A DNA stretch of 64,000 bases, taken from assembly GCF_009834535.1 (NCBI RefSeq), contig NC_045713.1, positions 13,640,001-13,704,000 on the forward strand, given 5' to 3'. The position numbers and the translations under genes are program-made. The notes beneath the pieces are model-generated. The model had not been told where the DNA came from. It saw only the letters and a program-made list of their open reading frames with translations, and searched no databases. The stretch is from Camelus ferus. Lineage: Eukaryota. Below, one piece after another: positions 25,757 to 25,830 of this stretch. The first letter of the stretch is position 1, and every line of letters starts with the position of its first letter.

Positions 25757-25830
<74 letters not shown>

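Follow-up and report, generated by a model that had tools for sequence, protein, structure and literature searches.

Introduction

The closest described systems are the human CAG/polyglutamine (polyQ) genes and the coding CAG repeats of livestock. Among the uninterrupted reference tracts surveyed in human genes, the longest belonged to AR (22 units), HTT (19), TBP (19) and ATN1 (15), and the length of pure CAG was correlated with length variance (r = 0.62) (PMC1896166). Pure-CAG length predicts polymorphism in this survey and in a bovine one, and the signature that slippage leaves in coding CAG repeats is summarised in both (PMC1896166; PMC3014979). Bovine polyQ tracts have a mean length of 7.26, and in bovine polyQ genes pure CAG tracts were found to mislead annotation into placing false introns (PMC3014979). 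Glutamine-repeat variation has been studied earlier in one camel gene, the dromedary AR (PMC5802489).

Our literature search turned up no description of a glutamine tract in ZNF598 from any species. ZNF598 is a cytoplasmic, ribosome-associated E3 ligase that acts as the sensor of collided ribosomes. To repress the translation of endogenous mRNAs, the human protein requires its unstructured central domain (PMC5504347). The gene is absent from the text of the bovine polyQ survey and from part of its supplements (PMC3014979). The pure CAG tract that we describe here in camel ZNF598 is one of the coding polyQ microsatellites whose length varies between lineages, a well-known class.

Results

The ZNF598 gene and its CAG tract

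The window, by which we mean the whole stretch of 64,000 nucleotides of Camelus ferus DNA that was analysed, contains a complete ZNF598 coding region on its minus strand. The features used below are as follows.

23217..34347, minus strand: ZNF598 coding span, 12 exons, CDS of 2775 nt encoding 924 aa (introns all GT-AG; 0 internal stops; ZNF598-specific Pfam domains)
34123..34347, minus strand: exon 1, with start codon and RING finger (PF25447 RING_ZNF598, E 2.3e-24; exon limits from the spliced model)
26423..26540, minus strand: exon 6, 118 nt (exon lengths of the spliced model)
25637..25881, minus strand: exon 7, 245 nt, the seventh of the 12 coding exons (bounded by an AG acceptor and a GT donor; aligns to orthologue segments)
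25830..25880, minus strand: conserved segment EEEDREVAAAIRASVAA, predicted helix nucleus (invariant residues in 35 amniote sequences and AlphaFold2)
25761..25829, minus strand: (CAG)23 tract, Q23, residues 357-379 of the 924-aa model (Tandem Repeats Finder and codon listing)
23217..23570, minus strand: last exon, with the second half of the PAH domain, the C-terminal C2H2 finger and the stop codon (PF23208, E 1.7e-18; PF23202, E 2.5e-14)

The N-terminal RING_ZNF598 match (PF25447) scored 86 bits against a cutoff of 27. Pfam families matched on minus-strand exons other than exon 7 comprised RING_ZNF598, zf-C2H2_13, PAH_ZNF598 and zf_C2H2_ZNF598 (E 1.7e-18), with separate exons matching PF23230, PF13894 (below cutoff), PF23202 and PF23208. 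The 924-aa camel model was 89% identical to ZNF598 of hippo, 88% to that of porpoise, 86% to cattle, 85% to pig and 82% to human. It thus combines a RING, N-terminal C2H2 fingers and a C-terminal PAH domain with a C2H2 finger in a collinear, intact frame. By its domains and sequence identity the gene is the camel orthologue of ZNF598 (yeast Hel2 family), and by orthology its product would ubiquitinate eS10 and uS10 on collided ribosomes. The camel and human proteins have in common the RING_ZNF598 domain, the N-terminal C2H2 fingers, PAH_ZNF598 and the C-terminal C2H2 finger, at lengths of 924 and 904 aa, respectively (PMC5504347). The flanks of the tract are almost identical between camel ZNF598 and its mammalian orthologues, whereas the glutamine run itself is Q23 in camel and Q3 in human and great apes.

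On the plus strand, positions 25761-25829 form a perfect (CTG)23, which is (CAG)23 on the minus strand. Tandem Repeats Finder returned a period of 3, 23.0 copies, 100% matches and 0 indels for this interval. When the whole window was scanned with a 24-base CTG pattern, all 16 overlapping matches fell at 25761-25829, against 0 expected from 100 dinucleotide-preserving shuffles. The minus-strand frame across the tract reads EEEDREVAAAIRASVAA-Q23-ETRRSEDQVEG. All 23 codons of the tract are CAG and none is CAA, and the CAG run, at least 10 units long and uninterrupted, is translated as glutamine. Exon 7 of the camel gene therefore does contain an uninterrupted, in-frame CAG microsatellite.

An earlier note on this DNA had named the gene as ZNF598, numbered the exon as 7, described the tract as pure CAG without CAA and placed it in the linker that follows the N-terminal zinc fingers. 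The ZNF598-specific Pfam domains together with the identity of 82-89% to five mammalian orthologues bear out the first of these, the full spliced model the second, and the codon listing with Tandem Repeats Finder the third; the location C-terminal to the N-terminal fingers was likewise recovered on the camel model, as was the reading frame that the note had given.

Several other features were recorded in and around the locus. The ZNF598 start codon is preceded, at a distance of about 580 bases, by a run of 160 N (34925-35084). Outside ZNF598, the window holds a perfect tandem 9-mer, GGCAGCATC, in 3.8 copies (window 17042-17075) and an array of the 6-mer CGGAGC at 46909-46979 (about 12 copies, 72% matches). 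In the fallow deer Dama dama (locus L004:5429-11887), a MARVEL-domain gene called on the opposite strand overlaps the 3' part of the deer ZNF598.

Splicing around the tract and effects on gene models

In predicted isoforms of bats (Myotis, Eptesicus), RRNEG is followed immediately by PKEASTNG, with exons 6 and 7 omitted. The corresponding camel exons sum to 118 + 245 = 363 nt, so a double skip would preserve the frame and remove the polyQ helix. At the 3' end of exon 6 (window 26423-26432, minus strand), two GT donors lie 9 nt apart, in the arrangement GGAG/GTACAAGAG/GTGGGA, with slashes at the two exon ends. Orthologue isoforms read either ...WRYKREEED or ...WREEED, 3 aa apart, and the hippo isoforms are 910 and 907 aa long. 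This suggests a conserved alternative donor that would add or drop RYK just before the polyQ exon.

In the ZNF598 protein models of Camelus ferus (P0111) and Ursus maritimus (P0091), a splice boundary was placed at or inside the CAG tract and the conserved helix was lost; the C. ferus model restarts at the first base beyond the repeat (window 25760). The false-intron artefact described for bovine polyQ genes is thus the same in these two models, which illustrate how a repeat can corrupt a gene model.

Length of the glutamine run across amniotes

For comparison we collected 262 proteins, using as queries a fin whale orthologue, the C. ferus protein and the hippo protein, together with cluster listings. 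The fin whale orthologue (Q9) came from a search of representatives with exon 9, in which matches were mostly fragments. Run lengths were counted on the 222 of the 262 proteins that carry the flanking motif; camelids are represented among the 262 by the truncated C. ferus model alone. The run ranged from 1 to 11 glutamines with a mode of 3, distributed as follows.

Runs of 1, 2, 3 and 4 glutamines: 33, 18, 68 and 9 sequences
Runs of 5, 6, 7 and 8 glutamines: 28, 12, 13 and 19 sequences
Runs of 9, 10 and 11 glutamines: 8, 12 and 2 sequences

No glutamine run of 12 or more was present at any position in the 262 fetched proteins, and a homology search limited to the exon 7 region returned no longer tract. 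The next longest run in a set of over 220 sequences is about half as long as that of camel, the extreme of a long-running trend.

Birds and a turtle have AAKRQEEKK at the site and opossum has AARRQEEKK (run of 1). AAQQQEE is found in human (NP_001392593.1; P0235), great apes, most rodents, Afrotheria and Xenarthra, with primates mostly at 3. In Laurasiatheria runs span 2-11 and are commonly 4-11. Pure runs were counted at 5 in rhino, 7 in horse and 6 in ass and zebra among perissodactyls; at 5 in goat and sheep, 6 in buffalo and 7 in cattle among bovids; at 7 in Dama, 8 in Cervus and 8 in musk deer, with 4 versus 7 within Muntiacus; and at 8 in pig, one pig entry having 10. They reach 7-8 in mustelids, 9 in bear, 10 in hyaena and mole, 8-10 in whales, 10 in porpoises and 11 in hippo. 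Pangolins, shrews and a hedgehog have 2-3. Interrupted tracts were seen in canids (Q5PQQ), seals (QQPQQ) and two dolphins (Q6HQ2HQ5 and Q9HQ4, up to 15 with the His interruptions). At the DNA level, the loci of three species were also pure CAG: (CAG)10 in mole, (CAG)9 in fin whale and (CAG)7 in fallow deer.

The tract was already commonly 4-11 units in Laurasiatheria and shifted between relatives, so the camel allele was not reached by a jump from Q3 to Q23. The earlier note had given QQQ for the human protein, which NP_001392593.1 confirms (Q3), and had named a long, functionally neutral polyQ widespread among mammals as a finding that would speak against its reading. On this last point the result is divided: moderate tracts are common in Laurasiatheria, but none comes near 23 (maximum 11 in 222 sequences).

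Probable origin of the tract by slippage

The site is an old coding CAG microsatellite grown by slippage. A passage from KRQ/RRQ through QQQ to a fluctuating pure run, combined with the exclusive use of CAG, is the signature of replication slippage. The states observed are KRQ or RRQ outside the placentals (birds, turtle, opossum), QQQ across the majority of placental lineages, a pure CAG run among Laurasiatheria, commonly of 4-11 units and differing between close relatives, and 23 and 29 units in Camelus. Past about 10 pure units, slippage presumably became frequent and the camel lineage drifted upward, the added glutamines lengthening a conserved, predicted alpha-helix that starts at EEEDREVAAAIRASVAA in the disordered central linker. 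Length constraint at the site would be weak and Q23 most likely tolerated (near neutral) and variable in length among camels.

Length differs among close relatives throughout the comparison, between the two Camelus values (23/29), within pig (Q8/Q10), between horse and ass (7/6), and among cattle, buffalo and goat (7/6/5). The free variation from 1 to 11, together with the bat isoforms that skip exons 6-7, argues for weak length constraint at this site. Judged from this variability across species, Q23 is most likely near neutral, although at twice the run of any other mammal it could exceed the tolerated range. Taken together, we consider it likely that the camel tract is a tolerated, probably length-polymorphic product of slippage.

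The expectation of polymorphism, voiced already in the earlier note for a pure CAG tract of such length, is sound by the human survey (r = 0.62), on which measure strong polymorphism of the camel tract would be expected (PMC1896166). The 23 and 29 units in two assemblies, the Q8 and Q10 of pig and the pure-CAG rule make length polymorphism in camels probable.

A predicted helix running through the tract

Hardly any variation is seen between birds and mammals in the 17 residues that directly precede the tract, of which E1-E3, A8-A10, R12, A13 and S14 are invariant in 35 amniote sequences. With the alignment of these 35 sequences, AlphaFold2 modelled the camel exon peptide as one helix (residues 2-49) that runs through the tract, with mean pLDDT of 82, 97, 96 and 87 in the first four ten-residue blocks, followed by low-confidence coil. 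In the AlphaFold2 model of full-length hippo ZNF598, a helix at residues 334-371 runs through Q11 with pLDDT of 75-78, isolated between low-confidence segments. That model has a mean pLDDT of 40, poor overall and too poor to show contacts of the helix with other domains. AlphaFold2 often draws polyQ as helix. A sequence search returned no solved ZNF598 structure. The helix is positioned between the module of RING and zinc fingers and the part with the PPPGF motifs and PAH domain; on these models, a free-standing helix within a flexible linker would gain about 20 residues from Q23.

The flanking segment was also considered as a ubiquitin-interacting motif (UIM). A UIM has an acidic patch followed by hydrophobic-x-x-Ala-x-x-x-Ser, and EEEDREVAAAIRAS, in a protein of the ubiquitin pathway, fits this pattern by eye. 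Pfam families, UIM included, gave 0 matches to the 20-aa camel or the 61-aa human segment at E values up to 10, a PDB sequence search with the flanking segment returned only a designed helical repeat (E 0.66), and the literature search found no paper ascribing a UIM to ZNF598. With support from neither profile nor literature, the UIM identity was rejected.

Functional consequences

A longer glutamine helix may alter ZNF598, having been selected in camels or having measurable consequences for ribosome quality control. It might act through helix-helix self-association, through condensation or through a changed spacing of the ribosome-binding and E3 module relative to the GIGYF2-binding region. 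The tract directly extends an amniote-invariant segment that is confidently predicted as helix, translational repression by human ZNF598 depends on its unstructured central domain (PMC5504347), and camel, at twice the next longest run, stands out from over 220 sequences. Against these points, run length at the site ranges freely and without evident constraint between 1 and 11 (15 if His interruptions are included), exons 6-7 are dropped entirely in the predicted bat isoforms, and pure CAG usage is a signature of slippage and not of selection for glutamine. We therefore regard functional tuning by the tract as unlikely.

A special mRNA hairpin was examined separately. The tract RNA had a minimum free energy of -44.4 kcal/mol, compared with a mean of -47.4 for shuffled controls (z = +1.06). 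The fold being no stabler than that of the controls, the hairpin was rejected, and a special effect on the translation of ZNF598 itself is without support. The changes in self-association or dosage that the earlier note had put forward as possible are likewise unsupported, and no result of the analysis points to an altered function.

Alternatively, the camel tract may be a slightly harmful, near-threshold repeat (23-29 pure CAG) that was fixed by drift in small camel populations and may occasionally expand harmfully. The 23 units exceed the longest uninterrupted human reference tracts (AR 22, HTT 19), long pure tracts were the best predictor of expansion-disease genes in the human survey (PMC1896166), and the second assembly shows as many as 29. 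However, neither 23 nor 29 reaches the value of about 35 that is usually quoted as the threshold (PMC1896166), and the present evidence does not separate this explanation from plain neutrality; we consider it quite unlikely. We know of no camel phenotype associated with the tract. Both of its lengths also fall short of the threshold of about 35 Q that marks polyQ expansion disease (PMC1896166), and with the lack of a known phenotype this indicates that the locus is not a polyQ disease locus. Starting from 23-29 pure units, at the border of the unstable range, natural camel alleles might reach lengths at which the glutamine helix drives self-association or aggregation of ZNF598, which seems very improbable to us. 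If true, camels would have a tuned ribosome-collision threshold or a natural polyQ disorder of ribosome quality control.

Tract length in Camelus assemblies

The 23 units are the value of the assembly, with no read spanning the tract. An independent draft of Camelus ferus, GCA_000311805.2, has (CAG)29 at the same position in the exon (L001:4718-4815). In this draft, four bases are missing at the 3' junction of the tract and eight extra bases are present about 100 nt downstream, leaving exon 7 out of frame; the fetched ZNF598 locus contains 251 N. GCA_000311805.2 is a short-read draft and the junction differences are not multiples of three, as is typical of draft errors beside repeats. The window differs from this locus by about 15 substitutions in 8,877 bases (about 0.17%), and across several exons it encodes the same residues as P0111, the ZNF598 protein of Camelus ferus in GenBank (100% identity). 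The window sequence is therefore that of an Old World camel, but not assembly GCA_000311805.2.

Logan contigs from two further DNA runs matched the left flank exactly and ended 33-34 letters past 25752, within the tract and without bridging it. Contigs of k=31 that do not bridge indicate a tract too long for the graph, that is, of at least about 9 units, and nothing further. A long pure tract in two independent assemblies (23 and 29) is not the artefact of one assembly. In Camelus a long pure tract has thus been seen twice independently, with a count that may be 23, 29 or a range.

That the true tract is far shorter, its 23 units having come from mis-assembly or polishing, is extremely unlikely: assembly length errors classically occur at repeats, visible errors mark the 3' junction in the C. 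ferus draft and 23 rests on an assembly without read-level confirmation, but the tract is long and pure in each of two independent assemblies (23 and 29), the k=31 contigs of two other DNA runs stop short of crossing it although about 8 units or fewer could be crossed, 7-11 units are already present in related species, and the exon in the window holds its reading frame exactly.

Discussion

Lineage-specific polyQ expansions are common, and the category to which the camel tract belongs is therefore an ordinary one. Its host is the ribosome-collision sensor, in which the central linker is functionally required yet poorly understood. Natural variants from Q1 to Q23 that extend a conserved predicted helix provide a ready length series for tests of this linker. 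In addition, as a genetic marker in camels, a pure CAG tract of 23-29 units should be highly informative.

Compared with known systems, the camel tract resembles the human CAG/polyQ genes (AR, HTT, TBP, ATN1 and the ATXN genes) in being uninterrupted CAG translated as glutamine. Its length is within the normal range of these genes and exceeds their reference pure tracts (22, 19, 19 and 15) (PMC1896166). As for the human genes, high polymorphism is to be expected, and by human criteria the camel tract is an expansion-prone locus. It differs in its host: human polyQ sets are dominated by transcription-related proteins, whereas the camel tract sits in a cytoplasmic ribosome-associated E3 ligase. 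The coding polyQ repeats of livestock and other mammals (the bovine survey, the RUNX2 QA repeat and the dromedary AR) are likewise pure CAG, poorly conserved in length and often polymorphic, and the 23 units of the camel tract are well above the bovine mean of 7.26 (PMC3014979).
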